A stretch of DNA of 64,000 bases from IMGVR_UViG_3300028592_000004:62001-126000, one strand, 5' to 3'; positions 25,306 through 54,224 are shown, counted from the stretch's first letter. Notes: generated by a model not told the origin, from the sequence alone. Program-made: numbers and translations.

Positions 25306-26094
25306 TTACAGTACATCCCGTACTGACTGTGGGATCGGTTCGAGGGGCTGCATTGCCCCGATGTTGTCCACGTTTGTCCGGAACCACTTCTCGAACTCTT
25401 CGTCCGAACAGCGGTTCTGGAAGCCGGCACCTGCGGCAATGTCTGCCTTGCTCCACTTCCGATTCCGGAAGCGTTCCAGGCGACGACGGGCGACAGCATA
25501 ATCCAGCTTGTGCAGGTGGACAAGAAGGAGGTTCGGGTCGACCGAAATCGTCTTGTGCGGGACGAGGATCGACTCGTGGAAACCCTTGCACCACATCATC
25601 GGTACACGGCTCAAAAGCGGCTTGCTGTACTGCGTGGTCGGATACCACCAACCGCGGTGTTCCAGCATCCGACTCTGGATCAGAGCCTGATCCTCTTCAC
25701 CGATCTGATGCACAACCTCAAAGCCAGTGCATCGCACGACAGGCTGAACCATGTCGGCCGCGTACTCGACCAGATTCGTGTAGTGCGAGGCCGGATCAGT
25801 CAGGACGAACTCGTCGACCTCGACGAAGAGGACCGCCTCATAGCTGTTCAGCAGGAAGTGCTGGAAGTCCTGAACCGTCTTCAGCATCCAGTCGTGATCG
25901 ACCTCGTCGTTGAAGACCGACACGACACGGATATCGCGTGCAACCGCATCCTCCAGCGCCAGGTTGTCGTCCGAGTGGTTGTCCAGAATGAACAGGTCCG
26001 AACCATACCCATGATTGATGTAGTGGTCGCACCAGACCGGCAGAAACTCCGGCTCATCCTTGACGATCGTGAAGATGGCTAGGGGTTTTCGCAT
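25306..26094 (-). CDS. GT2-like glycosyltransferase (Glyco_tranf_2_4 type)
   Basis: IVKDEPEFLPVWCDHY, ILDNHSDD, VLFVEVDEF, LLLVHL. Confidence 0.75.
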   Translation of the reverse strand: MRKPLAIFTIVKDEPEFLPVWCDHYINHGYGSDLFILDNHSDDNLALEDAVARDIRVVSVFNDEVDHDWMLKTVQDFQHFLLNSYEAVLFVEVDEFVLTDPASHYTNLVEYAADMVQPVVRCTGFEVVHQIGEEDQALIQSRMLEHRGWWYPTTQYSKPLLSRVPMMWCKGFHESILVPHKTISVDPNLLLVHLHKLDYAVARRRLERFRNRKWSKADIAAGAGFQNRCSDEEFEKWFRTNVDNIGAMQPLEPIPQSVRDVL

Positions 26095-27515
26095 CCAAGG
26101 GCTTTCAGAATCTGCGTCGTGCTGTACTCTGGCAGACGCGGGACGTAGTAGGTCTCCTTGACCAGGTCACTGCCCACGGCTCCGCCGGGCAGGTCGATGT
26201 CATCCGCGACGCGGACAAGCACGTCAGGACGGATCAAGCGAATCAGCTCGCTCGGCGTCTGCTCGTTGAAGACGACGACGAGATCGACGCAGCCCAAGGC
26301 AGCGACCATCTCAGCGCGATCGCCCTGCTTTGTCTTCGGACGATTCGGCCCCTTGCTGGCCGACACGCTGCTGTCGGTGTTCACCGCGCCGATCAAACGG
26401 GTGCCGCGGCGGCGGGCCTCCACGAGAACGTGGACGTGCCCGGGATGCAGCATGTCAAAGCACCCGTTGCTGAAGACGACCTTCTCGCCGGCAGCCTGCC
26501 ACTGAGCACAGGCCAGGGCCGCAACCTCTGCACTGACGATCTTGAAGTACGGATGAATCGCGGCAGCCTTCGCCAGCCGCAGTTCGAGGGGATCGACGAC
26601 AGACGTCCCGGGCTTCGTCACAACCGTACCTGCCGCCAGGTTCGCAATCTGAATCGCCAGCGGAAGGTTGTCGTGAGAGATAAGCTCGACCGCCAGTGTT
26701 GCCGTAAACGTGTCGCCGGCACCGCAGACGTCATAGACATGCGAAACCCGCGTCGGAAATCGACTGACGCCAGCTTGATCGAACAGAATCGCTCCGTTCC
26801 GGCCGTTGGTGCAGACAACGTTGCTGACGATTCCGTCGAGCCCAAGGTCGACCAGGCTCTCGGAACCATTCTCAATCTCATCAACCTCCAGACCGGAAAT
26901 CTGAGCCAACTCAGTTTCATTCGGAGTGATGACGAACGCGCCACGGAGGTACGAAAAATGGACCGGCCGCGGATCGACGATGACCTTGGCGCCGGCAGCG
27001 TTCGCGTACTTGATCACTTCGGAGAGCAGGCTGTGCCTCGTACCGAGGGCACCTTTCGCGTAGTCGGAGATCAGGACGATCTTGTACGAATTCGCGTTCA
27101 GGACTGCCTTCAAGCGAGTCAGGTAGTCCGCGGCGCTGGCCGGTGCGTGCGGCTGATCGTTGTCCTCCCGGGTCAGCAGACGGGTGCCACTCCAGATCCG
27201 ACGCTTAACGGTCGGGCCAGCGAAGCGACGCTCGCTGCCCACCGAGTAGATGTCGATGGCGTGATGGCCGCACAGTGCGACGAGGTCCGAACGATGCGTC
27301 TCGTCGGACATCACAGTGAACAGGTCGCAACGGCCATGCAGGGCGGCGACATTGGCAGCGACGTTTGCAGCTCCGCCGAGGGAGCGAGTCACTGACTGGC
27401 GCTGGTAGACCGGAATCGGGGCCTCGGCCGCGATCCGAGTGGGCTCGACGAAGACTGCCTCGTCGATCATGACATCGCCGATCACGAGAATCTGCGATGG
27501 ATCCTGCTGGGGCAT
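26079..27515 (-). CDS. hldE: bifunctional heptose-7-phosphate kinase / heptose-1-phosphate adenylyltransferase
   Basis: VIGDVMID...EAPIPV, GGAANVA, VYDVCGAGDTF (PfkB) plus VFSNGCFDMLHPGH, NTDSSV..SKGPNRP. Confidence 0.9.
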   Translation of the reverse strand: MPQQDPSQILVIGDVMIDEAVFVEPTRIAAEAPIPVYQRQSVTRSLGGAANVAANVAALHGRCDLFTVMSDETHRSDLVALCGHHAIDIYSVGSERRFAGPTVKRRIWSGTRLLTREDNDQPHAPASAADYLTRLKAVLNANSYKIVLISDYAKGALGTRHSLLSEVIKYANAAGAKVIVDPRPVHFSYLRGAFVITPNETELAQISGLEVDEIENGSESLVDLGLDGIVSNVVCTNGRNGAILFDQAGVSRFPTRVSHVYDVCGAGDTFTATLAVELISHDNLPLAIQIANLAAGTVVTKPGTSVVDPLELRLAKAAAIHPYFKIVSAEVAALACAQWQAAGEKVVFSNGCFDMLHPGHVHVLVEARRRGTRLIGAVNTDSSVSASKGPNRPKTKQGDRAEMVAALGCVDLVVVFNEQTPSELIRLIRPDVLVRVADDIDLPGGAVGSDLVKETYYVPRLPEYSTTQILKALGCENP

Positions 27516-27516
27516 T

Positions 27517-27534
27517 TCAATTCCCGGGGATTAA
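27517..27534. promoter_or_regulatory. 18-bp palindromic operator-like motif
   Basis: TCAATTCCCGGGGATTAA (16/18), 1 nt before hldE ATG. Confidence 0.65.
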
Positions 27535-27737
27535 TTTCCATCGAAACCGCGAGAGGTATGCGGTGGAGCAATTTCGCCTGTGAGACCTCGGCCTCGATCG
27601 CGAACGCTGACGTCGCGATTGCTCTGGTTGCAAGGCGGGCAGATGAAGTTGAACCGGCCGATCTTTGGGAACGGCTTTCGACATTTCAAACACAGCCGGG
27701 TCTCACGACCCGGCTGCGATTCATTCTCTTTGGACAT
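27531..27737 (-). CDS. small C4 zinc-finger protein
   Basis: CLKCRKPF...FICPPC. Confidence 0.7.
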   Translation of the reverse strand: MSKENESQPGRETRLCLKCRKPFPKIGRFNFICPPCNQSNRDVSVRDRGRGLTGEIAPPHTSRGFDGN

Positions 27738-27744
27738 CCTTGTC
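27733..27744 (-). promoter_or_regulatory. CsrA-type binding hairpin on start codon
   Basis: GACA-AGGA-UGUC containing the AUG at 27737. Confidence 0.65.
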
Positions 27745-27768
27745 TAACCTGCGACCATCCGGGTCGGC

Positions 27769-28995
27769 TTATTCGGCGGCTTTCGTCAGCTCCACAACGA
27801 ACGTCGCCTTCTTGTATTCGATCAGGTGTTTCCCGATCAACTTCGTGGGCATTTCCTTGCCCTCGGCGACGACCTTGCCCTTCTCGTTCACGACGTAGAC
27901 GTCGATGTAGGGCGCTTCGTTGCCGTCTTCGGACGCGCCACCATTGGTGATGGCGACGACGACCTTGTCGGTCGTATCCGGGATCGTCTTCTGGATCGTC
28001 AGCAGCGCTTCACCGTCGCCGACGTCCTTGACCTTCTTCTTCATCGTGAGGAACTTCTGAGCCTGCGCGAGCTTCTCGGCCTTGACCTTGATGGTCATGT
28101 TGGCCTCGACGTCCTTCTCGGGCTCTTCTTCGTACTCCGCGTCCTGCTCCGGCGTCGTCCGGGACTTCTTGCCCTTGGACTTCGCCTTCGCCGGCTTCGG
28201 ATCTTCCTCTTCTTCGTCCTCGTCCTTGGACGCCTTCGAGGACTTGCTGGACTTCGACGACTTGTTGGACTTGGAGCTCTTGCCCTTGGGGGCTTCCTCC
28301 TCTTCATCCTCTTCGTCTTCCTGCTCCTCCTCGTCCTCCTCTTCTTCGGCAGGCTTCTTGGACGACTTGGAGCTCTTCGAGGACTTACCCTTTGCCGGCT
28401 TCGGATCCTCTTCTTCCTCTTCGTCGTCCTCTTCTTCGTCCTCGTCCTCTTCCTCATCCTCCTCTTCTTCGGCAGGCTTCTTGGACGACTTGGAGGACTT
28501 GCCCTTGGCGGGCTTCGGATCCTCTTCCTCTTCGTCTTCGGACTCGTCGTCCTCCTGCTCATCCTCTTCTTCGTCCTCTTCCTCCTTCGAGGCCTTAGAC
28601 GACTTGGAGGACTTGCCGGCCTTGGCTTTGCCCTTCGCTTCGGCCTCTTCGACCGCGGCGAGACGGAGCTCGACGAACTCACTGAACTTGAGGTCCGGCT
28701 TCTCCAGCAGGAAGTCGAGGTACTCGATGTACGCCGCGGCCTGGCCTTCGGCGTCGAGCCCTTCCTCTTCCGCGAGGTTGCCCATCAGGTACGAGGGCAG
28801 ATCGATCGTCGGCTCTCCGTCGACAACGGAGTCCTTGAAGAACTGCTCGAACGTCAGGTCTTCGTTGTACTGCGAGGCGATCACGAACGCCTCACAGAGC
28901 GCGATGTCGCCGCCGGCCTGGACAAGCTCCGCCGGGAGCGATTCGAGAAGCTCCTTCGGAGTGAGGACCTTCGTCGACTTCTTCTTCGGTGCCAT
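27769..28995 (-). CDS. protein with long disordered acidic / Lys-Ser block repeats
   Basis: Repeated EEEDPKPAKGKSSKSSK units between two folded-looking ends. Confidence 0.75.
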   Translation of the reverse strand: MAPKKKSTKVLTPKELLESLPAELVQAGGDIALCEAFVIASQYNEDLTFEQFFKDSVVDGEPTIDLPSYLMGNLAEEEGLDAEGQAAAYIEYLDFLLEKPDLKFSEFVELRLAAVEEAEAKGKAKAGKSSKSSKASKEEEDEEEDEQEDDESEDEEEEDPKPAKGKSSKSSKKPAEEEEDEEEDEDEEEDDEEEEEDPKPAKGKSSKSSKSSKKPAEEEEDEEEQEDEEDEEEEAPKGKSSKSNKSSKSSKSSKASKDEDEEEEDPKPAKAKSKGKKSRTTPEQDAEYEEEPEKDVEANMTIKVKAEKLAQAQKFLTMKKKVKDVGDGEALLTIQKTIPDTTDKVVVAITNGGASEDGNEAPYIDVYVVNEKGKVVAEGKEMPTKLIGKHLIEYKKATFVVELTKAAE

Positions 28996-29036
28996 GCTTC
29001 ATTCTTCCTTCGAGTGGGTGCTCAGAGCAGAGCGAA

Positions 29037-29228
29037 CTAGGACTGGATCTCGGCCGCGGGGCCGGCAATTTTCGGCTGAAGTTCATCACGCCAGATACGG
29101 CAGTTGCTCGGCGCGTTGACGCCGATCCGTGCCTTATCCTGGCGGCTGTCGCAGAGGACGATCTCAATCAGACCATCACTGGTCTCGATGACGATCTTTT
29201 CGTTTTTCTTACGGGACAGGACGAGCAT
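29037..29228 (-). CDS. csrA: carbon storage regulator CsrA/RsmA homologue
   Basis: MLVLSRKKNEKIVI...ARIGVNAP..CRIWRDEL; start ATG 29228. Confidence 0.92.
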   Translation of the reverse strand: MLVLSRKKNEKIVIETSDGLIEIVLCDSRQDKARIGVNAPSNCRIWRDELQPKIAGPAAEIQS

Positions 29229-29311
29229 TTTCGAATCCTTCTTTTGACGTGGTGATAGCCCTCCTGGGCGTAGGGTAACTGGTCCGGGAAACCGACTACA
29301 AGGGCCGGAAT

Positions 29312-30277
29312 CTACCGAAGAAATTCGCCAAACGCCGCGACGTTGCGTCGGCGGCACATGGCGTTGTAGAGGTCGACGACCTGATTCAGATCTCTCGATC
29401 GAAGAAGATACGTCGGGTAGCGCTGGACGCTGGCCAGGGCCTTGACTGCGTCCATCGGCGTGGGCTGCTCAATGCGCCGCACTTGGATTCGACCCAGACC
29501 GGACCGACTCGGATCACCGTAGACGGCTTCAGGAATCTGGGCACCAGCCGGATACAGCAACAACTGTCGGAACCGCATTGTCGGATGGGTTCCCTGTTTG
29601 TCGCCAGACAGGCTCATCACCTCAATCGCGCCGCTAGCCTCGAACTGGCGCATCATCTTCCGGGCTCGCCAGCGGTCGATCCGCGTGTCGATGAACTGTG
29701 TGAACGACATCTTCAGGCCGGCACGACGAATCGAGTAGAACTGCGGATCGTGCAGAACATGCTCATACACGGCATGTGAGTACGTTTCCGATCGAACAAC
29801 GAGGTCGTACTTCGTACAAGGCTGGGCAAGTCTCTGCCGGAACATCGACCAACCGTCGTCCTCTGGGTAGAGGTACGTGTCAGCCAGCTGCGGAAAGAGA
29901 ACTCGTTCGATCTGTTGCCAGCTGTTGCCAACGCGACGGGACCAACACCAGGGGCAGATGTTGGCGAGATTGCAATGTCGAAGGTTAAACGACTTGCCAC
30001 CCTCTTTGAGTCCGATGTCGCAACAGACGGGCATGCAGTTCAGAACATACGAGAGGTGATCTTCCCGATTGCCAGTGGTCTCCTCCCACCCGTTCTTCGT
30101 CAGCAACCCGACCCGAGCCCTCCAAATCGAAAGCACGGACGCCAGAGCCTCCTTAGTCGCCTGCTTGCCGGAAACAGGGTGACCGACGATCGTCGAAATG
30201 ACGGCGTAGATCTGAGAGAGGCTGAACGGACTCGCAATTTTCGGGTAGAGGATCTTGAGCGGCAGAATTTTCGGCAC
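29312..30277 (-). CDS. remote rolling-circle Rep (HUH family)-like protein with Zn knuckle, HUH motif lost
   Basis: CNLANICPWCWSRR (cf. Rep_1 C..RLCP.C.WRR), GAIEV, SVQRYP (cf. AKY), C-terminal AMCRRRNVAAFGEF. Confidence 0.45.
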   Translation of the reverse strand: MPKILPLKILYPKIASPFSLSQIYAVISTIVGHPVSGKQATKEALASVLSIWRARVGLLTKNGWEETTGNREDHLSYVLNCMPVCCDIGLKEGGKSFNLRHCNLANICPWCWSRRVGNSWQQIERVLFPQLADTYLYPEDDGWSMFRQRLAQPCTKYDLVVRSETYSHAVYEHVLHDPQFYSIRRAGLKMSFTQFIDTRIDRWRARKMMRQFEASGAIEVMSLSGDKQGTHPTMRFRQLLLYPAGAQIPEAVYGDPSRSGLGRIQVRRIEQPTPMDAVKALASVQRYPTYLLRSRDLNQVVDLYNAMCRRRNVAAFGEFLR

Positions 30278-30287
30278 GGTCTTCCTT

Positions 30288-30305
30288 TCAATTCCCGCGG
30301 ATTGA
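30288..30305. promoter_or_regulatory. 18-bp palindromic operator-like motif
   Basis: TCAATTCCCGCGGATTGA, 10 nt before the GTG at 30277; identical inverted copy at 36838. Confidence 0.7.
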
Positions 30306-30338
30306 ACCGGACGCAGAATAGCCAGTCGGAGGAGCCTG

Positions 30339-30412
30339 CACTACGTTATGTCGTCGAAAAACCCCCACTACGTTATGTCGACATAACCCAGTTACCTATT
30401 ACAAGGTAATAG
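30339..30412. repeat. direct repeat and palindrome cluster (iteron/origin-like)
   Basis: CACTACGTTATGTCG at 30339 and 30366; perfect palindrome GTTATGTCGACATAAC 30372-30387; CTATTAC-aag-GTAATAG 30396-30412. Confidence 0.75.
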
Positions 30413-30571
30413 TGCGCCTCCACGGACGGCCGCTCCGCTCGAAGAGCGGCGGAGCGTATGCCGTCGTGTCGGCGGAATGGGATCAAAATCACGCCACGAA
30501 TGAATAGTGGCCCGGTGTCACGATCCTTCGATCAACCGGGCCACGCTCCGCCACCGGGCGATTCGATTCCG

Positions 30572-32122: not shown

Positions 32123-32135
32123 AGAGACCTCCTAG

Positions 32136-32531: not shown

Positions 32532-32534
32532 GGT

Positions 32535-33656
32535 TCAAACTGCCTGTGTGGTGGAACGGGGACGGGTCTTGAGGTAGCGGGTCAGCTCTTCGTCGCTCAT
32601 CTCGTCGAGCGCCATCTGAGCCGACAGCTCGTACGGCTGCATCCGCATGCCGTACACCTCGGGGATGCCTTCGATCATGCGCGTCTTCGCGCCGTAGAAG
32701 GCCAGGGGATACTTCGCCTTGACCATCTCGAAGATCTTGGCGAAGACAAAGCGGATCTCCCACTCCGCGAACTTGGCGGTCCGCATCAGCACGGTGTGCC
32801 GAAGCGTCCGCAAGTTGCACGAGAACGCGATCTCATTCGACTGACCGTTGGGAGCGATCCGCCGAATGGCGCTGGTCATCTTCTTCCGGATGTCGAAGTT
32901 GAAGGAGTTGTCCGGCTCCCACTTCAGGTGATGGGCCAGCTCAGCGACAACTTCACCACTCCAGTCTCCCGCGGCATCCTTTGGCGTACTGAGCAGCGCC
33001 TTGATGACGTCGGGTACGTGATCCCGGTAAGACTTCTCGATCAGGAGACCGGCATTCCGCACGGCGTTGTAGTTGCCGAAGGTGAGGTCTTCGGCGAACA
33101 GGTGCTTCGACAGACCGCCAGGCGGCTTCCGAAGACCGAGCCGGCACTCAGCCAGGTAGACCGTCTTCTCGATCTGGGCGGCGCACGTCTCGAACAGGTC
33201 CCGCACCGGATTCAGGATCGGGTCCCACACGAGCTGCATGTTCTCGATCCGACAGTAACGGCCGGACGTCTGACTGAACGCCGTGCCGATCCGATGTCGA
33301 ACGAGCTCATGGGTGAAGACCCGACTGCAGTCCCGAATCAGGAAGTTGAACTGGACGTGCTCGAAGATCGACCCGTGGGCCGTATCGAAGCATCCGACCA
33401 GGTTGTCCCAGATATCCCGGGTCCGCGACACGTTCGAGTTCTTCCCAAGCGTGAGGCTCTTGTAGCAGAGCTTCGCGAACATCGAGCAGAGGATCTCCGC
33501 CCACGACAGACCCTGCTTGAGGGCCAGGTCCACTGACTCCAGGAACTGCTGATTCCCGGTGTCGATCAGGTAGCGGCTGACCTCGTTCTCGTCGACCTGG
33601 GTGAAGCCAACGAAGTAGACGCTGGGCTGCACGAAACGTTCAAACTCATCATCCAT
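32535..33656 (-). CDS. thyX: flavin-dependent thymidylate synthase
   Basis: AKLCYKS, HGSIFEH, SRVFTHELVRHR, SQTSGRY. Confidence 0.92.
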   Translation of the reverse strand: MDDEFERFVQPSVYFVGFTQVDENEVSRYLIDTGNQQFLESVDLALKQGLSWAEILCSMFAKLCYKSLTLGKNSNVSRTRDIWDNLVGCFDTAHGSIFEHVQFNFLIRDCSRVFTHELVRHRIGTAFSQTSGRYCRIENMQLVWDPILNPVRDLFETCAAQIEKTVYLAECRLGLRKPPGGLSKHLFAEDLTFGNYNAVRNAGLLIEKSYRDHVPDVIKALLSTPKDAAGDWSGEVVAELAHHLKWEPDNSFNFDIRKKMTSAIRRIAPNGQSNEIAFSCNLRTLRHTVLMRTAKFAEWEIRFVFAKIFEMVKAKYPLAFYGAKTRMIEGIPEVYGMRMQPYELSAQMALDEMSDEELTRYLKTRPRSTTQAV

Positions 33657-33669
33657 TGTGAGGGTCCTT

Positions 33670-33687
33670 TCAAAACCCGCGGATTGG
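33670..33687. promoter_or_regulatory. 18-bp palindromic operator-like motif
   Basis: TCAAAACCCGCGGATTGG (15/18), 13 nt before thyX ATG. Confidence 0.65.
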
Positions 33688-33688
33688 A

Positions 33689-35153: not shown

Positions 35154-35185
35154 CGGAACGGCCCTCCAGAGCCCCAGGACAGCGT

Positions 35186-37750: not shown

Positions 37751-37923
37751 CCTTGTTCATCGCGACTGTCTTTGAAGACGGCTTTGACGATCAGAGCGCA
37801 AGCACTGAAAAACAACCCGCCGGCCACCTCGAAGGCGAACTGCAGGAAGCCCAACTCAGTGCCGTGTGTCGGCGGACACGCTCGCAAACGAATGACTCGC
37901 TCGCGACGGAATTGATTACGCAT
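37735..37923 (-). CDS. possible small membrane protein
   Basis: MRNQFRR...FLQFAFEVAGGLFFSACALIVKAVF, one hydrophobic helix. Confidence 0.4.
   Translation of the reverse strand: MRNQFRRERVIRLRACPPTHGTELGFLQFAFEVAGGLFFSACALIVKAVFKDSRDEQGCRTE
37747..37756 (-). promoter_or_regulatory. CsrA-type binding hairpin on start codon
   Basis: ACA-AGGA-UGU containing the AUG at 37750. Confidence 0.55.
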
Positions 37924-39856
37924 GGAAGCGTTGACCCTTTCGGAACGTGCTGCACGTGCTCCCGCACGAGAGTGCAACCGCTATGACCGGCTGAAAGCCG
38001 ATTTGGATCGCCTGTTCGCCGACAGCCGGCGGGACAAGCGTGAAGTTGTCCGGATCGTCCGGGAGTACGTCGAGGAAGAGGAGCTTCCAACTCTTGAGCC
38101 CATTCTCCCTCTCCTACTGAATCTCAAGGGCAAGCCGTTCACGCTGTTTGAACACTTGCCCTTCTCACCGCTGTTCTTTACTCACTGCGCGCGGTCAGTG
38201 ATTTTCAAAACAGGGCGTCAGTGCGGTAAGTCAACCTCCATTTCTGCGTCGGGGATCCTGCAGGCGAACACGATCCCGAACTTCACAAATCTGTTCGTCA
38301 CGCCTCTGTACGAGCAGGCGCGTCGTCTGTCGAACAACTCGGTGCGGCCGTTCATCGACGAATCGCCGATGCGGCACCTGATGACGGGTGTGGGGATCGA
38401 GCAGAGCGTTCTGCAGCGATCGTTCCTGAACAAGTCGAAGCTCATGTTCTCGTTCGCGCTGATGGACGCGGACCGGACCCGCGGTATCTCCGCGGACCGG
38501 CTGTCCATCGACGAACTGCAGGACATGGATGCGGCGCATATCCCGATCATGATTGAAACCATGTCCCACTCCGATTGGGGCTGGCTGCAAATGACGGGTA
38601 CGCCGAAGACATTGGACAACACGCTTGAAGAAAAGTGGATCCGATCGTCCCAGGCAGAGTGGTTCATTCCCTGCACGCATTGCACGACCGGCGGGCAGCC
38701 GACGCTGAATATCCCGGCCCGTGAGCACCACCTGCTCGACATGATCGGGCCGTACCACGACTTCATCTCGGAACAGAATCCGGCGATCATTTGCCACAAG
38801 TGCCGCAAACCGATCAACGCACTGTACGGCCGGTGGGTACACCGCTATCCGGAGCGTCGCTGGACCAGTGCTGGATACCACATCCCGCAGCTGATCCTTC
38901 CGCTGCACTACGCCCGTCCGGACAAATGGCAGGTCTTCCTGTCGAAGATGCAGGGCGGAACCACCAGCCCCGCCACGTTCTTCAACGAAGTGCTCGGGGA
39001 ATCGTACGACAAGGGCACCAAGCTCATCAGCTTGACTGAGCTGCAGTCTGCGGCCTGCCTCGACTACGAGAACAGTGGTCGAATGCCGAGTGCCAAGGTG
39101 ATCGAAGCAGCCAACGACAGCCGGTACGTCTGCCGTGTTCTAGCAATCGACTGGGGTGGTGGCGGTGAGGACGAAATCAGCTTCACGACGATGGCCTTCC
39201 TGGGCATGCGGCACAACGGCCAGATCGAGGTGATCTGGGGTCGCCGTCTGCTCACGCCGAACGATCACCTTCGGGAAGCCGAGCAGGTCTTCGCGGTCTG
39301 GCAGATGCTCCGGCCGGACGTTGTCGCGCACGACTTCACCGGTGCCGGCGCCTTCCGAGAAGACTTCATGGTCTCCGCCGGGGTGCCGCTGGAGACCATC
39401 ATGCCCGTCGCATATGTGCGGGCTGCCAGCTCCCGGATCATCCAGCACGTCCCAGCCACCATCCACCTGCCGCGGGACCACTACCGCGTCGACAAGACGC
39501 ACACGCTGCTGTTGACCAGCCAGTGCATCCGTCGCCAGATGGTCCGCTTCTTCAAGTGGGACAACAAGGGCGAAGAGGATCGCGGTCTGCTGTTCGACTT
39601 CATGTCCCTCATCGAAGAGAAGATCCACGGTCGGACGGCCGGCGACGTCTACCTCATCAAGCGCGGAACCGGCCCGGACGACTTCGCCCAGGCCGTCAAC
39701 ATCGGTTGTTTGGCGATCTGGCACACCCAGGACGCCTGGCCGAACTTCGTCAGCGGCGCTAAGTGGCACGTCAAGAAGGAGCAGGAGTGGGCCACGGGCA
39801 GCCGCGACCACGGCTGGGAGAACGACCGAGGCGACAGCTACTTCCAGACGCCCTAG
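37922..39856 (+). CDS. terL: terminase large subunit (lambda GpA-type with Zn finger)
   Basis: KTGRQCGKST, SIDELQD, TGTPK, CTHC/CHKC, GYHIPQL, nuclease LAIDWG and DDFAQA. Confidence 0.9.
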   Translation: MEALTLSERAARAPARECNRYDRLKADLDRLFADSRRDKREVVRIVREYVEEEELPTLEPILPLLLNLKGKPFTLFEHLPFSPLFFTHCARSVIFKTGRQCGKSTSISASGILQANTIPNFTNLFVTPLYEQARRLSNNSVRPFIDESPMRHLMTGVGIEQSVLQRSFLNKSKLMFSFALMDADRTRGISADRLSIDELQDMDAAHIPIMIETMSHSDWGWLQMTGTPKTLDNTLEEKWIRSSQAEWFIPCTHCTTGGQPTLNIPAREHHLLDMIGPYHDFISEQNPAIICHKCRKPINALYGRWVHRYPERRWTSAGYHIPQLILPLHYARPDKWQVFLSKMQGGTTSPATFFNEVLGESYDKGTKLISLTELQSAACLDYENSGRMPSAKVIEAANDSRYVCRVLAIDWGGGGEDEISFTTMAFLGMRHNGQIEVIWGRRLLTPNDHLREAEQVFAVWQMLRPDVVAHDFTGAGAFREDFMVSAGVPLETIMPVAYVRAASSRIIQHVPATIHLPRDHYRVDKTHTLLLTSQCIRRQMVRFFKWDNKGEEDRGLLFDFMSLIEEKIHGRTAGDVYLIKRGTGPDDFAQAVNIGCLAIWHTQDAWPNFVSGAKWHVKKEQEWATGSRDHGWENDRGDSYFQTP

Positions 39857-40242
39857 TCGCCTTTGGCGATTCGAATCGAGTCATCGTCCATGTGGTGGGT
39901 CGAGATCTCGATCAGCTCGTTGTAGAAGTCCATACCCCGGAAGCGGTGGCGGAGCCCGGTTGGGATCCGCACGCACTCTCCGGGGCTGAGGACTCGCGTC
40001 ACCAGGTCTGGGGAGCTCAGATCGAGCCCGCCGTCCGGACCCAGGCAGTCTTTCGGCGACGTGAACAACAGAACGTGACCCGCGCGGACGAAGAAGCACT
40101 CGTCCTTGAGCCGGTGGTAGTGGAAGCTGCATTGCTTCCCCTGTTCAATCACCAGGCTCTTGCCGCAATAGCCGGGCTGGTTGCACATGATCAGCTCATG
40201 GCCCCAGCCCTTCTCCACACGTTCCGTTTCGATGGCTTCCAT
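39853..40242 (-). CDS. cupin-fold sugar isomerase-like protein
   Basis: KGWGHE...YCGK.L....G..CSFHYH..KDECF, PTGLRHRF. Confidence 0.8.
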   Translation of the reverse strand: MEAIETERVEKGWGHELIMCNQPGYCGKSLVIEQGKQCSFHYHRLKDECFFVRAGHVLLFTSPKDCLGPDGGLDLSSPDLVTRVLSPGECVRIPTGLRHRFRGMDFYNELIEISTHHMDDDSIRIAKGD

Positions 40243-40261
40243 GCCGCACCGTCCTTAGGGC

Positions 40262-40651
40262 CTAATCGTCCTCGTCGTCGAGGAACTCCTCGTTCTCGTC
40301 GTCCTCGTCGTCGAAATCTTCGTCGTCGAGCTCTTCGTCATCGAACTCTTCGTCGTCGAGTTCCTCATCATCGAACTCTTCGTCGTCCTCTTCGTCGTCG
40401 AACTCTTCGTCCTCAAATTCCTCTTCGTCGTCGAACTCTTCGTCGTCGAGCTCTCCTTCGAAGTCATCCGCCAGCGCGGCAGGAGAAGGGATCCCAAGCC
40501 GAGCGTAGAGATCTTCCTCACGGTCAAACGCGACTCCGGTTGTATGAAGCACTGGTCCGATCCTTTTGGCTTTGTTCGGGCTCAAGTTGATATTTGCGTC
40601 GCTGGGATACCCACCACTCGGCTGACACGGCCCAGTGTGGCGAATCACCAT
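40262..40651 (-). CDS. small protein with extremely acidic C-terminus
   Basis: DDEEFDDEEL-type repeats over ~60 aa. Confidence 0.6.
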   Translation of the reverse strand: MVIRHTGPCQPSGGYPSDANINLSPNKAKRIGPVLHTTGVAFDREEDLYARLGIPSPAALADDFEGELDDEEFDDEEEFEDEEFDDEEDDEEFDDEELDDEEFDDEELDDEDFDDEDDENEEFLDDEDD

Positions 40652-47091: not shown

Positions 47092-47127
47092 CCGAGTTCG
47101 CGCTTTCTGTTGAGGGTGAGGAATGGA

Positions 47128-47490: not shown

Positions 47491-47500
47491 GACGAACCTT

Positions 47501-49189: not shown

Positions 49190-49859
49190 TCGAACTTCCG
49201 TTGGCAGTGATGGATTGAATCAGCTGCTCGGTGGTTCCGTTCTCCAGAACCAGCGAGCTCAGTTGTCGGAGCAGGGCCTGAACCCCCTCACGGATGATGG
49301 CGTTGATCTCGTCGGTTTTCGACCGCTCCATGTCGAAAATTGCGTTGAACATGACGGGATCGTCGGCGAAGTCGCCTTGCACGTTGGCAGCCTCTGGCCG
49401 CACGGCAATCTTGAGCACATCCGGAGGGACCATGATGCCCTCCTGATCGAGCACGACCCCGATGTACCGGCAGATCTCCGGCGAGAAGGGGTCGTCTTCT
49501 TCCGGCGGATTGAGGAGCATGGCCTCGCTGATTCCCCAGGCACACTCCTCGGCATCCGCCGGGTCGAATGTGGTTGGGTCGAACGTGCTGCCGGAAAGCA
49601 CGTTGCACAGCATGATGAAGTCGGGGGTCAGCTTGAAGAAGCGGTCCGACGTCAGAATGGCGATCCCTGCCATCAGACGGTCGAGGATCCCGCGAGCTAG
49701 CTGGAGATTGAAATCCGACTGCAGCTCCATCCGGATCGTCTCAGCGTCCCACTGAAGACTCTCAGGACCGTACGTGTCCATCAGGATCACGACGAGCGGC
49801 GTCGCGTACGTGTCACGACTCTGGAGGAGTTTGCGCTTGCTGTCCTTGCTGCGACTCAT
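49155..49859 (-). CDS. conserved jumbo-phage hypothetical protein
   Basis: 234-aa ORF, YGPESLQWD and FIMLCNVLSG...ECAWGISEA. Confidence 0.7.
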   Translation of the reverse strand: MSRSKDSKRKLLQSRDTYATPLVVILMDTYGPESLQWDAETIRMELQSDFNLQLARGILDRLMAGIAILTSDRFFKLTPDFIMLCNVLSGSTFDPTTFDPADAEECAWGISEAMLLNPPEEDDPFSPEICRYIGVVLDQEGIMVPPDVLKIAVRPEAANVQGDFADDPVMFNAIFDMERSKTDEINAIIREGVQALLRQLSSLVLENGTTEQLIQSITANGSSNGRSEDQAASN

Positions 49860-50334
49860 TGACCGTTGCCCCTTGTTGGACGCGCCGGCACTCAGCCAGA
49901 CGTCGGATGAACAGGACGGTCACATTGTAGGCGATCGTTTCCAGCGGTTCATGCGGCAGCTCGTCTACAGTCGTCAGTGTCGTGTAGTCGAAGTACGCCT
50001 TGCTTCGGGTGCTTCGGACGAACCGACGATCCGCGAACCCGAGGTGCATCGCCTCGGTAGCTTTGCCTTCTCGGCTGGCCGCAAACAGCGTCAGCGCGTG
50101 CGTAACCAGCTCGCGGTGAAAGCGCTTCAGGATCATCAGACGCGCTTCGGGTGTGGACATGTTCAGCCGGGACAGCAGATCCGCTGTCCAGAGCATCATC
50201 CACTCCCCGGGCATCAACTCCTGGGTGTCCGGCGGCACGTGCTCGTAGCGGAGCACGAGAGTGAAGACCGACGCTATCTGACTGGGAGACAGCGCCGGGC
50301 AGGTTGGTCGAATCGATTCGAGAGTGACCATCAC
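49813..50334 (-). CDS. hypothetical protein
   Basis: 173-aa ORF coupled to neighbours. Confidence 0.65.
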   Translation of the reverse strand: MMVTLESIRPTCPALSPSQIASVFTLVLRYEHVPPDTQELMPGEWMMLWTADLLSRLNMSTPEARLMILKRFHRELVTHALTLFAASREGKATEAMHLGFADRRFVRSTRSKAYFDYTTLTTVDELPHEPLETIAYNVTVLFIRRLAECRRVQQGATVNESQQGQQAQTPPES

Positions 50335-50630
50335 TTGCAGTTGACGACGAAGTCCTGACGGTAAGCGGCCGGCGTCACTTCGCGGGACTGGAACTTTTCG
50401 AAGTCGATTTCCTTCCCCGCGGCGTCGACCGGGTACGAGCCCGACTGGTTGGTCGGGTCGAGGCTGATCTGGCCGGGCAGCTTGCTGTTCTTCATCGCGA
50501 AGTTGCGAGCGTCGGTCGTGGTGACTTCGGTGGGGTTGTCTCCCTCCACGCTGACGAGGGCGGAGTTCGGTCCGCGCTCTTCGATCTTTCCAATTCGCAG
50601 TGCCATCTTGGGTCTCCGGGATTCAGCCAA
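50331..50630 (-). CDS. hypothetical protein
   Basis: 99-aa ORF (start may be ATG 50606). Confidence 0.65.
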   Translation of the reverse strand: MAESRRPKMALRIGKIEERGPNSALVSVEGDNPTEVTTTDARNFAMKNSKLPGQISLDPTNQSGSYPVDAAGKEIDFEKFQSREVTPAAYRQDFVVNCK

Positions 50631-50673
50631 TAGCTAAAAGAAAGGCTGATGGTTAAGGGGCAGGGCATAGTAG

Positions 50674-50762
50674 GCACCTCACGCAGAATGCTCAATTCGG
50701 AATTCGCGGCCCGCCGGAACGGGCCTATTCGAAATTCGATATTGAGCACCCTGCGGAGGTGC
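50674..50762. other. long intergenic imperfect hairpin (~89 nt)
   Basis: GCACCTC/GAGGTGC, CGCAG/CTGCG, TGCTCAAT/ATTGAGCA and GGCCCG/CGGGCC nested arms. Confidence 0.75.
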
Positions 50763-50775
50763 GCGAGGACGTGCC

Positions 50776-50991
50776 TCAGACAGTGACCAGCAGACGCTGA
50801 TCGACCGTGTACGTGGGGTTCTCGGGGAACCGGAGTTCGGCTCGCTCAGCAGCAGCCGAATAGATTTCATGGGCCGCGGCGGTCAAAGGCACTTCAGCGA
50901 TCCGATCGCTGAGGCCGCGAAGGTGAAGGAGATTCAGTCCAGTTGATGCCAGCATGGCGTCAACGACGGGGTGCCAGGTGTGGGTGGCCAT
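50776..50991 (-). CDS. small hypothetical protein
   Basis: 71 aa from ATG 50991, downstream of operator motif. Confidence 0.55.
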   Translation of the reverse strand: MATHTWHPVVDAMLASTGLNLLHLRGLSDRIAEVPLTAAAHEIYSAAAERAELRFPENPTYTVDQRLLVTV

Positions 50992-51042
50992 TGCAGAAGT
51001 CCTCAAGTTGCCGGCTTCTCCGAGGTGCCGACGAGCCTCATT

Positions 51043-51060
51043 TCAATGCACGGGTATTAA
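51043..51060. promoter_or_regulatory. 18-bp palindromic operator-like motif (degenerate)
   Basis: TCAATGCACGGGTATTAA (14/18 on the reverse strand), directly after a strong terminator. Confidence 0.5.
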
Positions 51061-51062
51061 AC

Positions 51063-51096
51063 AAAAAAAAACCCGGTCAGGGGGTGCCTGACCGGG
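51063..51096 (-). terminator. strong intrinsic terminator
   Basis: Minus strand CCCGGTCAGG-5nt-CCTGACCGGG followed by 9 T. Confidence 0.9.
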
Positions 51097-51290
51097 CTCG
51101 CGCTCATGTGATTGGGATTACTTCATTGGAGCACCTGTACGAGTGGTTGTGTCGGATGGGTGAGGGAAAGTCTCAATCTTGTCGACCACTAACTGGTGGC
51201 CAACCACGGTCTCCGTCAGTCAGTGGTCAGTGCTAGAGCATGATACACCTCATTGTTCCTGGTCTTTCGCCAACGGCTAAGCTGACATCG
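51097..51290 (-). ncRNA. candidate structured non-coding RNA
   Basis: ORF-free ~200 nt ending in a strong terminator; three-way junction closed by GACCACTGACT/AGTTAGTGGTC (51183-51228). Confidence 0.35.
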
Positions 51291-51315
51291 AGCAAGTATA
51301 ATGACACAAAACCGC

Positions 51316-51630
51316 TCAAGATTTAGCGCGGCGGATTGTGATTTCCTTACGACGACTTCCGCGACGAACAACGACCCGGATCTGCCTCGCGTTCAGGGCC
51401 TCGAACACCGCCTCTTTTGCAGTCCCCGAAAGCGAGACGAGGCATTCCTTGGCATTCGAGTAGAGGTTGTCGAGCTGAGCTCTGACGGCACCACGCTTGC
51501 AGGGTCTGCAGCCAGACATCGAGGGCCGATTCTTGTGAGCCTGAAGTAGACATGGGACCGCCTCCCTGACAGTCGTGTTGGCGATGAGCGCGTCGATCGT
51601 CGCATCTTCGATGTAGACCAGGTTCTTCAT
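51316..51630 (-). CDS. hypothetical protein (Cys motif)
   Basis: 104 aa, GGAG RBS, GCRPC. Confidence 0.65.
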   Translation of the reverse strand: MKNLVYIEDATIDALIANTTVREAVPCLLQAHKNRPSMSGCRPCKRGAVRAQLDNLYSNAKECLVSLSGTAKEAVFEALNARQIRVVVRRGSRRKEITIRRAKS

Positions 51631-52058
51631 GCCGCATCTCCGATTCGAACTTCATCCTCCTCGCTGAGGTCTTCCATCAGCTTGATCGTGTCTCGCAGCG
51701 CAGACACTTCATCGACCAGAGTGCGGTAGGCCTCCTCCAGCTCGTGACGCGATCGGAAGACGAGGTCGACGTAGGCCAGACGGAACCAAGGCGGATCAGC
51801 CGTTGTGTACGGTTCGTTGATCGGAAATTCTTCCAGGTCGGCCGGCGAGCAGACGCCGTCGAAGACACCCCACTGCTCGCTCTCGACTTCCTCTTCTTCG
51901 TCATTGAGGGAGTTTGGCTGCAGAGGGATCGCCCGATATCGAAAGACCTCGTTGGGCATGTTGAGCCCATCCGAGGCTGTCACACGCATGCGGAACCCGT
52001 CAATGTTGCCGGCCTGGTAGGTCTGGAACTCTGGGGTCAGCGTGATGCCGTAGTTCAT
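51627..52058 (-). CDS. hypothetical protein, probably structural
   Basis: 143 aa, start lies in AGTTCATGGATGAACT hairpin. Confidence 0.7.
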   Translation of the reverse strand: MNYGITLTPEFQTYQAGNIDGFRMRVTASDGLNMPNEVFRYRAIPLQPNSLNDEEEEVESEQWGVFDGVCSPADLEEFPINEPYTTADPPWFRLAYVDLVFRSRHELEEAYRTLVDEVSALRDTIKLMEDLSEEDEVRIGDAA

Positions 52059-52067
52059 CCATGAACT
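52052..52067 (-). promoter_or_regulatory. CsrA-type binding hairpin on start codon
   Basis: AGUUCA-UGGA-UGAACU containing the AUG at 52058. Confidence 0.65.
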
Positions 52068-52068
52068 C

Positions 52069-52446
52069 CTAGAAGGTCACTTTGAGGTGCTTTCCATTCT
52101 TGCGGTAGAGGATGGCACAACCATCTACAGGGTATCCGATCTTGCCCTGGATGAAGAGACGCACTCGCTCTCGTACTTCAGGGCTCGCGTTGCTGATGAC
52201 TTCCACGAAGGAGTTCCGATAGCCGTCGATCGTCTTGCTGCCCGGCCCGCAGCACTGATTCGTGCTCAGCTCCGAGAGCATGACCTGATACGCCGGCACG
52301 GTGTAGACGCCGAACCCGCGGAACTCCGGGCAGGCCGCGAAAAAGGTGGGATCACCGAGTAGTTGCCGGAGCAGCTCCTTGGTGACGATCAGGAAGTTAG
52401 GCCCGGATGCTTCTCGCTCAGTCCGCGGCGGGGAACTGCCGACCAT
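52069..52446 (-). CDS. hypothetical protein, apparent paralogue of 51316..51630
   Basis: Start MVGSSPP at 52446; similar helix/Cys layout. Confidence 0.55.
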   Translation of the reverse strand: MVGSSPPRTEREASGPNFLIVTKELLRQLLGDPTFFAACPEFRGFGVYTVPAYQVMLSELSTNQCCGPGSKTIDGYRNSFVEVISNASPEVRERVRLFIQGKIGYPVDGCAILYRKNGKHLKVTF

Positions 52447-54224
52447 TCGATGACGTCCTTCCGCAGGGAGAACTGCTGAATCTTGAGGCCTTGCTGATAC
52501 ACCGCGGCGCCATTCATGACGTCTCCGCCGTTGTGACCGAGACGCAGGTCTGGGATGTTTGCTTGCCGCATTGCCGATGTCCGGATCGCCCAGAAGGCAC
52601 CAACAGGAAAGTGGACACGGTCGCCGCTCGCCTGGGTTCGTCCAAAGCTGTCCTGCCAGGGCCGGCCCGTGTACCACGAACCACCCGCGGCCCACGCTTT
52701 CTGCCCTGGCGTCAGCCGATAGTGCTTCACTGGACCGAGCATGTCCGCGTTAGTAGCGACGATCTTCTGCGCCAGGATCTGCATCCAGCGGGCATCCCGA
52801 TCGCAGAACGTGTCGTCGTCCATCCAGATCAGGTAAGGCGTCTCGATCGGCAGCTCCGGGTCGTAGAACATCTCCCGCATCACCGGGTACTTCTTGGCGT
52901 TCTCGACGTGCTGGTAGTGCTTGCGGATCAGGTTCTGGCTGACGAGTTCTTCCACCAGCTTCAACGACTCGGGTCCGAGTTCGTTGCTGCCGATCCGCAG
53001 ATCCATCCGATCGCGAGGCACGGTGCTGGTGATGGCGTGTAGGAACCGCCGGTGCATTTCGGGGTAGTCGCCATACAGCAGGCCGAAGATCGTAAAGCGT
53101 CCACCAATCTTGGGGTGATCGAAGATGGAGTGATCCACAGGCTGTCCGATGACTCTCAGCTGGAACTGGCTTGCCGGCGCCGGCTTCTTTGTCAGGCTGC
53201 GGCGGACCGTTCCATCGTTCTTGTGATCCAGGCTGGTCCGGTCAATCTGGAAGAGCGGCTCGGCCTTGTCGATCGCCTGAAGCGTGCCATCCGTGTAGTA
53301 CGACATGACAGCGTCTACGACCATCTCCGGCGAGATCATGTCGAGGCACTTCGGCACGGTCTCTTCGCCTTGCCGAATCGGATAGACGCAGTTCTGGCTC
53401 GGGTCGTCGCCGACGACTTTGCTTCGCCAGCAGCCGTGATGCTCGCAGCAGTCGAGCTGGCCGATCGTGTGCAGGAATCGGTGTGGGACCTGGATCTTCT
53501 CGGGACAGACCAGGCCGGAGTTCTCTCGGATGTAAGCCTCCCACCACCACGCCTCACGTCCGCCGGCCAGACAGACGCACGGCTTCTGCAGAGCTGCGGC
53601 GGCGTGCATCAGCATCGTCACACCGCAGATGGCGCCATCAGCGCCGTGGAGCAATCGCAGGACATCTCGAAGGGTCGTCTTGTTGACGAGGTTGATGACT
53701 CCCCTGAGTTCCGGGTGCCAGTTGTTCTTCGCGTCGGTTCCGATATGGACGACGTTGATGCCACGCTCCGCCAGCATGTCGACAACACGCTGAAAGCGAT
53801 CGATCCGCCACACCTTCGCAGGCATGTCGGCCTTCCCGCCCGAGATCATGATCCAGTACCGACCGCTGAAGATGCGCGTCTTTTCATACGCGCTCAGGTG
53901 GAGATCCGGATAGGGCTGTGTCACCGGAGCGACGAGGCCCGTCCGCTTCTGCAGGTCTCGGTGAAACCACGGCATGAAGTGGACGACTTCGTTCCGCTGG
54001 GCCTTGATCCCCTCGCCGTACTCCAGCTGGACAACTCGGCTCTCTTTCGGAAAGCCCGATCCCGTGTTGTGGAGGCGGATATGCGGGTTGTTCTCCCACA
54101 AGGCACTGTAGGTCGTCATCACGCCGATCTCGACATCCGGTCGAGCCAGGGCAAGATCCCGGACCACACCCGTCATGGCGATGATATCGCCGGGCGCCCG
54201 CCTATGCTTCAGCACCAGCTTCAC
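52389..54224 (-). CDS. GT9 (ADP-heptose heptosyltransferase-like) fused to a GT-A domain
   Basis: GDIIAM, PAKVW...F, NKTTLRDV, LMHAAAALQKP (GT9); C-terminal IWMDDDTF. Confidence 0.85.
   Translation of the reverse strand: MKLVLKHRRAPGDIIAMTGVVRDLALARPDVEIGVMTTYSALWENNPHIRLHNTGSGFPKESRVVQLEYGEGIKAQRNEVVHFMPWFHRDLQKRTGLVAPVTQPYPDLHLSAYEKTRIFSGRYWIMISGGKADMPAKVWRIDRFQRVVDMLAERGINVVHIGTDAKNNWHPELRGVINLVNKTTLRDVLRLLHGADGAICGVTMLMHAAAALQKPCVCLAGGREAWWWEAYIRENSGLVCPEKIQVPHRFLHTIGQLDCCEHHGCWRSKVVGDDPSQNCVYPIRQGEETVPKCLDMISPEMVVDAVMSYYTDGTLQAIDKAEPLFQIDRTSLDHKNDGTVRRSLTKKPAPASQFQLRVIGQPVDHSIFDHPKIGGRFTIFGLLYGDYPEMHRRFLHAITSTVPRDRMDLRIGSNELGPESLKLVEELVSQNLIRKHYQHVENAKKYPVMREMFYDPELPIETPYLIWMDDDTFCDRDARWMQILAQKIVATNADMLGPVKHYRLTPGQKAWAAGGSWYTGRPWQDSFGRTQASGDRVHFPVGAFWAIRTSAMRQANIPDLRLGHNGGDVMNGAAVYQQGLKIQQFSLRKDVIEWSAVPRRGLSEKHPGLTS

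Follow-up and report, generated by a model that had tools for sequence, protein, structure and literature searches.

The 64,000-nucleotide window analyzed here, which spans positions 62001-126000 of the 229,210-bp virus record IMGVR_UViG_3300028592_000004 (complete by CheckV), encodes a bifunctional enzyme of ADP-heptose synthesis, HldE, together with a fused glycosyltransferase (GT), termed GT9-GT2, whose gene lies at the 3' end of a tail/fibre operon. Based on sequence comparisons and structure models, we consider it an evenly balanced proposition that phage-made ADP-heptose serves the O-glycosylation of virion fibre proteins. A more specific scheme appears doubtful at present, namely that two unrelated lineages of tailed phages possess a self-contained heptose pathway with a cupin in place of the isomerase GmhA, and that in the present lineage an enzyme with a finger of the type known from the BAHT family of protein heptosyltransferases, joined to a GT-A domain, builds heptose O-glycans on collagen-like fibres. 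We infer all activities in the proposed mechanism, the acceptor included. The source of the window is, by sequence, a contractile-tailed jumbo phage (a soil myophage), as PHROGs profiles recognize a gp6-like baseplate wedge (genome positions 130820-132469), a tail sheath (145421-148207), and a major head protein (154400-155338). Positions below refer to the window unless they are marked as genome positions. The comparison set comprises 14 genomes, which are this phage (G000) and 13 IMG/VR relatives carrying GT9-GT2, five of them at least 90% complete.

The transferase is encoded by the following gene.

52389-54224, minus strand: GT9-GT-A (GT9-GT2) fusion, 611 aa, matching Glyco_transf_9 (PF01075) at 53 bits against a cut-off of 22

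An AlphaFold model built from an alignment of 40 homologues (mean pLDDT 90) predicts a GT-B fold at residues 1-325, a disordered linker at 333-361, and a GT-A fold at 362-611. The GT-B half matches four solved GT9 enzymes with Z-scores of 20-24; its G12-D13 pair is nearly invariant and its K137 invariant, and these residues correspond to the catalytic base and the phosphate-binding Lys of GT9. With the PF01075 cut-off passed, a predicted GT-B fold, and the Gly-Asp base and Lys retained, the enzyme is assigned to the GT9 family. The C-terminal half matches Glycos_transf_2 with an E-value of 0.002 only, below the Pfam cut-off; in the model it resembles many GT-A enzymes (Z 15-17.6), and its DDD469-471 motif is invariant. 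Full-length homologues of ~40-50% identity number at least 579 in a database search, and many of them lie on 170-229 kb contigs, which identifies GT9-GT2, on sequence evidence, as a core gene of an uncultured clade of 170-230 kb phages. Among ten family members, no other C-terminal domains were found by Pfam.

The nucleotide-binding segment of the phage enzyme and its accessory parts resemble different GT9 enzymes. In profile-profile comparison, E. coli WaaF was matched with 97% probability (E 6e-11) and WaaC with 67%; these alignments are limited to columns 97-228 and end before an insert of 50-60 residues that separates the last C-lobe strand from the final helix. The insert contains the invariant cysteines C259, C265, C279, and C293 and the nearly invariant C260. 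A BAHT profile, prepared from a 20-member alignment with TibC taken from the chromosome of the enterotoxigenic E. coli strain H10407, was matched with 94.4% probability (E 8.5e-8) over 210 columns, and this alignment continues through the cysteine insert. The BAHT residues C339, C342, C358, and C370, which are invariant iron ligands (PMC4358343), face phage C259-260, C265, C279, and C293, the first cysteine being displaced by a short gap, and both fingers possess a Gly-Cys-Trp and a Cys-x-x-(L/M)-I-T segment. Thus, the core is WaaF-like, but the accessory architecture resembles that of the protein heptosyltransferases. The model agrees with this division: the N-lobe, with three strands in ~100 residues and a long coil after it, is ~57 residues shorter than in WaaC and WaaF, a short N-lobe and a long coil being features that set TibC apart from WaaC (PMC4358343). 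The structural alignment to TibC covers essentially its whole catalytic domain (residues 97-391, Z 21.1, rmsd 3.0), and the alignments to WaaC and WaaF have lower coverage. The position of WaaC Asp261 in the heptose-binding D(S/T)G motif is occupied by Val202 in the phage enzyme (V-T-x), by Pro300 in TibC, and by Ser in AAH (cf. PMC4358343).

Taken together, the phage enzyme shares with the BAHT enzymes (TibC, AAH, BimC; PDB 4RAP/4RB4) a GT9-type GT-B catalytic domain, a reduced N-lobe, a long inter-lobe loop, a four-cysteine finger with GCW before the last helix, a non-acidic residue in place of Asp261, a gene that adjoins that of a presumed protein substrate, and, in the phage by prediction, an ADP-heptose donor. 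It differs in the GT-A domain fused to its C-terminus, in an identity of only ~23%, in going unmatched both under BAHT-type names in NCBIfam and in an ordinary HMM search against the PDB (phmmer with the finger segment alone gave no PDB match either), and in being phage-borne with a collagen-like fibre rather than an autotransporter beta-helix as the presumed substrate. Compared with WaaC, WaaF, and WaaQ, it belongs to the same CAZy/Pfam family, but carries the cysteine-rich insert and the fused GT-A domain and scores far under the curated cut-offs. The GT9 half probably works like a BAHT, judging from these alignments and the model, and by analogy its BAHT-like features point to a protein acceptor.

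Two genes of the phage are assigned to ADP-heptose synthesis.

26079-27515, minus strand: hldE, 478 aa, with Pfam matches to PfkB (110 bits) and CTP_transf_like (51 bits)
Genome 200434-201327, outside the window: hldD, best match TIGR02197

An intact bifunctional hldE among replication genes had been described in the initial annotation, and the gene does encode both domains, in a ribokinase-like plus cytidylyltransferase-like architecture, amid replication-type genes (Mre11/Rad50-like, ThyX, DNA ligase, and MazG-like). Its top NCBIfam matches, by a wide margin, are NF008454, TIGR02198, and TIGR02199; the best of them, NF008454, scores 325 bits, under the equivalog cut-off of 521, and HldE is thus a divergent member. 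The kinase GAGD motif (DVCGAGDT), the adenylyltransferase HxGH motif (FDMLHPGH), and the C-terminal STT (YSTT) are kept, the latter preceded by Tyr and not by Arg in comparison with PMC11573728. HldE is 37% identical to the E. coli enzyme and ~40% identical to its best cellular homologues, those named being from Alphaproteobacteria, so that it does not represent a recent capture. Homologues are encoded by 8 of the 13 relatives, including four of the five that are at least 90% complete, and the gene is split in two in one relative. A search of the rest of the genome for hldD, which had been suggested with the initial annotation, was successful. HldD has TIGR02197 as its top match (176 bits, below the cut-off of 274.6), aligns over its full length with E. 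coli HldD at 30% identity, and keeps the YxxxK motif of short-chain dehydrogenases/reductases (SDR) and the HKG segment; in the relatives G001, G002, and G005 it scores above the curated cut-off. The premise that HldE makes a donor that the GT9 enzyme uses is therefore supported, and it is strengthened by the presence of HldD and by the co-occurrence in the clade. The predicted use of ADP-heptose by the GT9 half is linked to HldE by this co-occurrence and by family chemistry, which do not constitute proof.

The initial annotation had also reported a cupin isomerase-like gene and the lack of gmhA and gmhB in the window. Both statements hold, and in profile searches the two genes are absent from the whole genome as well: SIS-type GmhA (SIS_2) was detected neither in this phage nor in the 13 relatives and four cyanophages, with control genomes matching in the same search, and no GmhB-type (histidinol-phosphatase-type) HAD phosphatase in the genome matched TIGR01656.

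39853-40242, minus strand: cupin, 129 aa, with Cupin_2 and Lyx_isomer matches

The isomerase step alone is without a gene and the cupin alone is without a step, which makes the cupin a candidate for the missing GmhA. Its match to Lyx_isomer (22.4 bits, cut-off 20.8) spans 38 residues only, and its metal site, His-x-His...Glu...His, is invariant. The highest-identity PDB fold matches (23-26%) are D-lyxose/D-mannose isomerases crystallized with fructose or mannose, which catalyze the unphosphorylated version of the same manno-type aldose-ketose isomerization. The cupin is 44% identical to gp312 of cyanophage P-SSM2 (E 8e-35). A survey of 50,697 phage records at E <= 1e-8 found homologues in 35 records, every one a cyanophage or marine single-virus genome. 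Thirty-one of them are exactly the 31 cyanophage/marine-virus records that also have an HldE-like match, and in the remaining annotated records the cupin is flanked by a kinase and a nucleotidyltransferase; the gap between cupin and kinase/transferase genes measures 38 bp-2.9 kb in all phages except one. The cupin may thus isomerize sedoheptulose-7-phosphate to heptose-7-phosphate in place of GmhA, an assignment that we rate as possible, somewhat short of evenly balanced.

The heptose clusters of T4-like cyanophages (P-SSM2, S-CAM1/3, Bellamy, Sf-FS3, and P-TIM68) provide the closest parallel in the form of a PfkB kinase, an adenylyltransferase, an SDR epimerase, and a cupin of 41-44% identity; as in the present phage, they lack a SIS-type GmhA. 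Their gene order is carbamoyltransferase, adenylyltransferase, PfkB kinase, a 114-aa protein, cupin, SDR epimerase, and 2-oxoglutarate (2OG)/prolyl-hydroxylase-type oxygenases, after which tail-fibre/virion genes follow. The cyanophage clusters differ in having separate kinase and transferase genes and in adding a small HAD phosphatase and a carbamoyltransferase; moreover, their genes are clustered, whereas the heptose genes of this phage are scattered over the genome. A 370-aa protein encoded upstream of the cyanophage clusters was considered as a counterpart of the GT9 enzyme and rejected, with a weak GT9 match and no finger alignment. The P-SSM2 protein gp311 (114 aa, L055:7101-7445) is annotated as phosphoheptose isomerase, but it has the HAD motif Asp-x-Asp-Gly-Thr and is therefore more likely a phosphatase, so that its annotation looks wrong; cyanophage 'phosphoheptose isomerase' proteins of ~110 aa gave no Pfam match. 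The present phage has a single HAD protein with a DxDG motif among those found, an NT5C-like phosphatase (genome 194736-195404) that is the only candidate for the GmhB step. It adjoins a Sulfotransfer_4 protein (E 1.8e-38; both genes within genome 194736-195996, L042:16736-17996), unusual for a phage, which might sulfate a glycan.

The GT9-GT2 gene and its neighbours form the 3' part of the tail/fibre operon, listed here in the order of transcription.

62093-63967, minus strand: collagen-like fibre protein, 624 aa, with two collagen segments and a Ser/Thr-rich C-terminal globular domain (PF01391, 116 bits)
56660-61629, minus strand: four clade-conserved tail-module genes (316, 255, 604, and 490 aa), recognized by synteny in relatives
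55983-56660, minus strand: collagen-like protein, 225 aa, GPQ type (PF01391, 60 bits)
54237-55166, minus strand: CgeB/YkvP-like GT-B, 309 aa (Pfam E 0.003; Atlas structure with TM 0.73 to Glyco_trans_1_2 clusters)
51627-52058, minus strand: acidic 143-aa protein, found 3' of GT9-GT2 in 16 of 16 related loci by tblastn
51069-51099, minus strand: strong intrinsic terminator with a 13-bp stem and a T-run, just past a 104-aa gene

The GT9-GT-A fusion and the GT-B gene, which the initial annotation had placed between structural and collagen genes, are present and intact, but they are located downstream of both collagen genes. Across 16 related loci the order is fixed: the 490-, 604-, 255-, and 316-aa genes, a variable cassette, GT9-GT2, the 143-aa gene, and usually the 104-aa gene, with a 234-aa protein and an AAA ATPase further 3'. 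In this phage, the tail-module genes lie downstream of the genes for the gp6-like baseplate wedge and the sheath. The terminator at 51099-51069 is the first minus-strand terminator-like site below position 64000, the only other one in the scan being 49088-49074; since no such site precedes it, GT9-GT2 is presumably made together with the late fibre genes.

Collagen-like genes, counted by a Gly-X-Y scan combined with PF01391, are recurrent neighbours of the transferase. Among the 15 relatives with an upstream flank, 10 have a same-strand collagen-like open reading frame (ORF) that ends 0.4-4.4 kb upstream of GT9-GT2, the distance in the window being 1.8 kb, and no collagen-like ORF was found downstream in relatives with flank. 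The Gly-X-Y runs of the window collagens reach 45 triplets. In four of these 10 relatives (L004, L007, L008, and L013), at least 81% of triplets contain Thr or Ser, mostly as Gly-Pro-Thr; in BclA-type fibres, this motif carries the O-glycans (PMC7157674). BAHT genes and C. difficile sgtA likewise adjoin the genes of their substrates: SgtA is a GT-A encoded next to the Gly-Pro-Thr collagen that is O-glycosylated by it (PMC7157674). The SgtA-BclA3 system and B. anthracis BclA thus share with the phage loci a collagen-like surface fibre of the Gly-Pro-Thr type, whose Thr residues are O-glycosylated by an adjacent-encoded GT-A (PMC7157674), but they differ in a UDP-GlcNAc or rhamnose-based donor, in decorating a spore rather than a virion, and in having no GT9 partner.

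We propose the following mechanism. The cupin would isomerize sedoheptulose-7-phosphate to D-glycero-D-manno-heptose-7-phosphate. HldE, by family assignment and the motifs seen, would phosphorylate this product at C1 and later adenylylate it, with the intervening 1,7-bisphosphate perhaps dephosphorylated by a host enzyme or by the NT5C-like HAD phosphatase. HldD, assigned on the same grounds, would epimerize C6. Late in infection, GT9-GT2, the clade-core enzyme whose gene stands at the 3' end of the tail/fibre operon, would consume this donor. The GT9 half would transfer heptose to Ser/Thr of a fibre protein in the manner of TibC and AAH, with the products of the collagen-like genes shortly before its own gene, or else the Ser/Thr-rich head of the 624-aa fibre, as the likeliest acceptors. 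A second sugar, or the initiating one, may come from the fused GT-A half, and accessory GTs that vary between phages (CgeB-like, GT2_4, RGP-like, and the capsid-side GT2-methyltransferase) may elaborate the glycan.

The cassette that begins with hldE bears on an alternative discussed below. It consists of four tightly spaced genes, hldE itself followed by three others.

25306-26094, minus strand: GT-A type glycosyltransferase, 262 aa, Glyco_tranf_2_4-like (Pfam E 1.2e-5, 26.2 bits, just under the cut-off of 27.5)
24238-25296, minus strand: RGP/GT75-like protein, 352 aa, with a DDDC motif, third cassette gene (PF03214 RGP, 84 bits)
23399-24265, minus strand: 288-aa protein, fourth cassette gene, with an LDDD motif read in the sequence

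The start of the 262-aa gene overlaps the hldE stop by 16 nt, and a counterpart is conserved 1.2-2.3 kb 3' of hldE in G001, G002, and G005. The RGP/GT75-like gene has no counterpart in the 13 relatives. The 288-aa protein has no Pfam match and is possibly a further GT-A.

Several observations weigh against heptosylation of virion fibres. The top fold match of the GT-B half is an uncharacterized GT9 enzyme from Veillonella, and the nucleotide-binding core scores higher against WaaF than against TibC. The N-terminal flattened beta-barrel that TibC needs for activity (PF21129) is present in BAHT homologues and absent from the phage protein, in which only PF01075 was found; the BAHT heptose contacts do not align cleanly either, with Arg286 two columns off the invariant phage Arg186 and Trp305 facing His207. 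For these two reasons, we did not file the phage enzyme as a BAHT. The complete relative G009 encodes GT9-GT2 and lacks both HldE and a collagen gene; the enzyme is thus presumably able to run on host ADP-heptose. The cupin model reaches a pLDDT of only 65, and generic cupins score about as well against it as isomerases do. The genes flanking the GT genes have no Pfam or PHROGs match, so that their description as structural genes in the initial annotation stands by position and clade synteny and not by name; their predicted structural role draws on these two features and on one low-confidence Atlas lead, a model that suggests a lectin-like jelly-roll at the C-terminus of the 604-aa protein. 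No RNA run among the runs listed holds the GT/collagen stretch. With regard to the acceptor, the adjacent 225-aa collagen of this phage has Ser/Thr in only 4% of its triplets (the 624-aa fibre in 19%), and five of the 15 relatives keep GT9-GT2 without an adjacent collagen gene. Collagen adjacency is nevertheless recurrent, and the acceptor is best taken to be some protein, frequently a collagen-like one, from the variable fibre cassette; collagen as the acceptor in this phage is not secure. The analogy with giant viruses drawn in the initial annotation does not apply, because collagen glycosylation there is on hydroxylysine and Lys is missing from the window triplets and almost missing from those of the relatives.

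The same features of the enzyme have to be weighed against an acceptor in the host envelope. GT9-GT2 might transfer heptose, together with a further sugar, to another lipid-linked glycan or to the inner core of the host, and such remodelling of the lipopolysaccharide (LPS) would alter the receptor, blocking superinfection, or keep progeny off debris. The WaaF-like core agrees with this possibility, which the initial annotation had raised as superinfection exclusion: GT9 is by name the LPS heptosyltransferase family, the NCBIfam matches are all LPS heptosyltransferases, though far under their cut-offs, WaaF is the best sequence-profile match, the catalytic Asp13 and Lys137 are retained, and such phage genes have been annotated in print as LPS auxiliary metabolic genes (PMC10747093). 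However, the shortened N-lobe is the one that binds Kdo2-lipid A in WaaC and WaaF, the Cys4 finger is a feature of protein heptosyltransferases, and the equivalent of Asp261 is lost. Moreover, the gene belongs to the late fibre operon and not to the early genes, and is core in a clade with differing fibre cassettes and presumably differing hosts; no integrase turned up in the scans, although no search aimed at integrases was made. LPS remodelling, the main rival, is therefore unlikely in our judgment, and the finger, the short N-lobe, the fibre operon, and the collagen adjacency favour virion heptosylation, the other of the two alternatives in the initial annotation, with the collagen target left insecure. 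A somewhat smaller probability is assigned to acceptors other than fibres: the enzyme might act on the 143-aa protein, the capsid, or another phage protein, on a protein of the host, or in the assembly of a polysaccharide, either free or linked to lipid. The constant position of the 143-aa gene, the five relatives without a collagen neighbour, and a genome rich in other GTs, with a sulfotransferase and methyltransferases, would fit such acceptors; on the other hand, the 143-aa protein has an ordinary Ser/Thr content (10%) and no repeats, and the recurrent collagen neighbours are rich in Gly-Pro-Thr.

It is improbable, in our view, that the heptose genes are unconnected to GT9-GT2, with the GT9 half acting on another nucleotide sugar and HldE and HldD feeding, for example, the GT-A genes behind hldE. 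The translational coupling of hldE to the GT2_4-like gene, which is also nearby in three relatives, would be explained in this way, as would the occurrence of GT9-GT2 without HldE in G009 and the Val at the position of the heptose-contacting WaaC Asp. However, HldE occurs in most phages with GT9-GT2, BAHT enzymes without that Asp still use ADP-heptose (PMC4358343), and a host that makes ADP-heptose would account for G009. Moreover, GT-A enzymes are not known to use ADP-heptose. Finally, heptose on hydroxymethylated bases could protect phage DNA against restriction and would explain the position of hldE amid Mre11/Rad50-like, ThyX, DNA ligase, and MazG-like genes; but a ThyA-type pyrimidine hydroxymethylase is encoded nowhere in the genome, the fold search revealed no likeness of the GT to known DNA glycosyltransferases, and the GT gene sits in the fibre operon. 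Mainly because of the missing hydroxymethylase, glycosylation of the phage genome was set aside as very improbable.

Heptosylation of fibre proteins would have parallels in other viruses. Mycobacteriophages, chloroviruses, and mimivirus also decorate capsid, tail, or fibre proteins by means of GT genes located near structural genes. To our knowledge, no use of heptose, of a virus-made ADP-sugar, or of a GT9 enzyme has been reported for these systems. Virion glycosylation is described as established in mycobacteriophages by Freeman et al. (2023), as cited in PMC12619734. Collagen glycosylation in mimivirus goes via hydroxylysine, unlike anything available in the Lys-free triplets of the window.

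Beyond what the initial annotation listed, the genome encodes HldD, two GT-A-type genes behind hldE, at least four further GT genes, and two PhyH dioxygenases. The CgeB-like GT-B gene next to GT9-GT2 is absent at the relatives' loci and specific to this phage, and the 143-aa protein has no family match in Pfam and PHROGs searches. A GT2-methyltransferase fusion (genome 152278-153531, L040:10278-11531) is located ~0.9 kb 3' of the major head gene; it occurs in three clade genomes only (this phage, G008, and G013), about 1-2.3 kb from the major head gene, which hints at capsid glycosylation. A GT-methyltransferase fusion beside a capsid gene recalls A064R of PBCV-1. A third sugar cluster (genome 43117-51434, L037:7117-15434) contains a 738-aa GT8/TOD1-like protein, a GT1 (364 aa), a GT2 (402 aa), a 662-aa protein without assignment, and the two PhyH-type 2OG dioxygenases (267 and 284 aa); the position of these hydroxylases next to GTs suggests protein hydroxylation followed by glycosylation. 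Adjoining the cupin gene, a 90-aa ORF (40255-40527, minus strand) shows 49% Ser/Thr, a high GC3, and a recurring Lys-Ser-Ser-Thr-Thr-Lys unit; as a 129-aa ORF in a different frame overlaps with it, it may be a mucin-like glycosylation substrate or an artefact. Between the 225-aa collagen and GT-B genes lie two genes for small Cys-rich proteins (55157-56040, minus strand), one of 168 aa with 14 Cys and one of 125 aa with 7 Cys and a weak DUF6171 match, which are not kept in relatives. The ThyX (Thy1) homologue near hldE (32535-33656, minus strand, 373 aa) has its profile match spread over residues 54-317, a span much wider than the 191-position model and thus indicative of a large insertion. 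The neighbours of hldD are a NUDIX hydrolase, a 541-aa Ro60/TROVE protein with a vWA domain, and a PAS-domain protein (genome 201586-203740, L043:5586-7740, and L003:558-1208).

The genome has a GC content of ~60%, and nearly all of its genes are on the minus strand. By far its longest plus-strand gene is that of the large terminase (gpA-like ATPase, 37922-39856), which converges on the cupin gene; its best match has 25-30% identity, and the terminase search found no close cultured relative. The major head proteins of the relatives share 43-71% identity within their clade. The GT/collagen stretch is 99-100% present in each of three soil metagenome runs. This soil origin and the ~40% identity of HldE to alphaproteobacterial homologues are only hints to the host. 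The 'moraphage' lineage of jumbo phages (PMC12619734) has core GTs and predicted Bacteroidota hosts, with no heptose mentioned, and no link to the present clade could be made. Seven tRNA genes (Gln, Glu, Ser, Leu, Tyr, Trp, and Phe) form a cluster at L042:17999-19470, and a tRNA with the anticodon TCA, called SeC by ARAGORN, is located at L044:13545-13619. In a relative from a marine metagenome (L005, 17307-18662), a reverse transcriptase (RVT_1) adjoins a DUF7694 protein a few kb 3' of GT9-GT2 and may belong to a diversity-generating retroelement.

Heptose genes have been annotated before in cyanophage records such as P-SSM2, viral heptose-nucleotide enzymes were found in 2024 to be active in vitro, with their role in viruses left open (PMC11573728, PMC11461863), and a phage gene for 'heptosyltransferase I' figures among published auxiliary metabolic genes (PMC10747093). 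In the literature searched, we found neither a phage GT9-GT2 family with a BAHT-type finger and a fixed place after collagen-like fibre genes, nor its pairing with phage HldE and HldD, nor a cupin proposed as the missing isomerase. If correct, the present reading would be the first description of protein heptosylation for a virus. O-heptosylated proteins, so far a matter of a few bacterial adhesins, would then include those of virus particles, the GT9-GT2 enzymes, of which at least 579 were found, would form a large family specific to phages, and GmhA would have a candidate non-orthologous replacement. Phage GT9 genes should accordingly be labelled as LPS auxiliary metabolic genes with caution when this is done automatically. 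For the question of what viruses do with NDP-heptose, the locus would give a concrete answer, and all of its components are expressible in E. coli, a bacterium with ADP-heptose of its own. More broadly, the reading would suggest that phages of soil and water commonly carry glycan coats on their tail fibres as a variable layer in the recognition of hosts.

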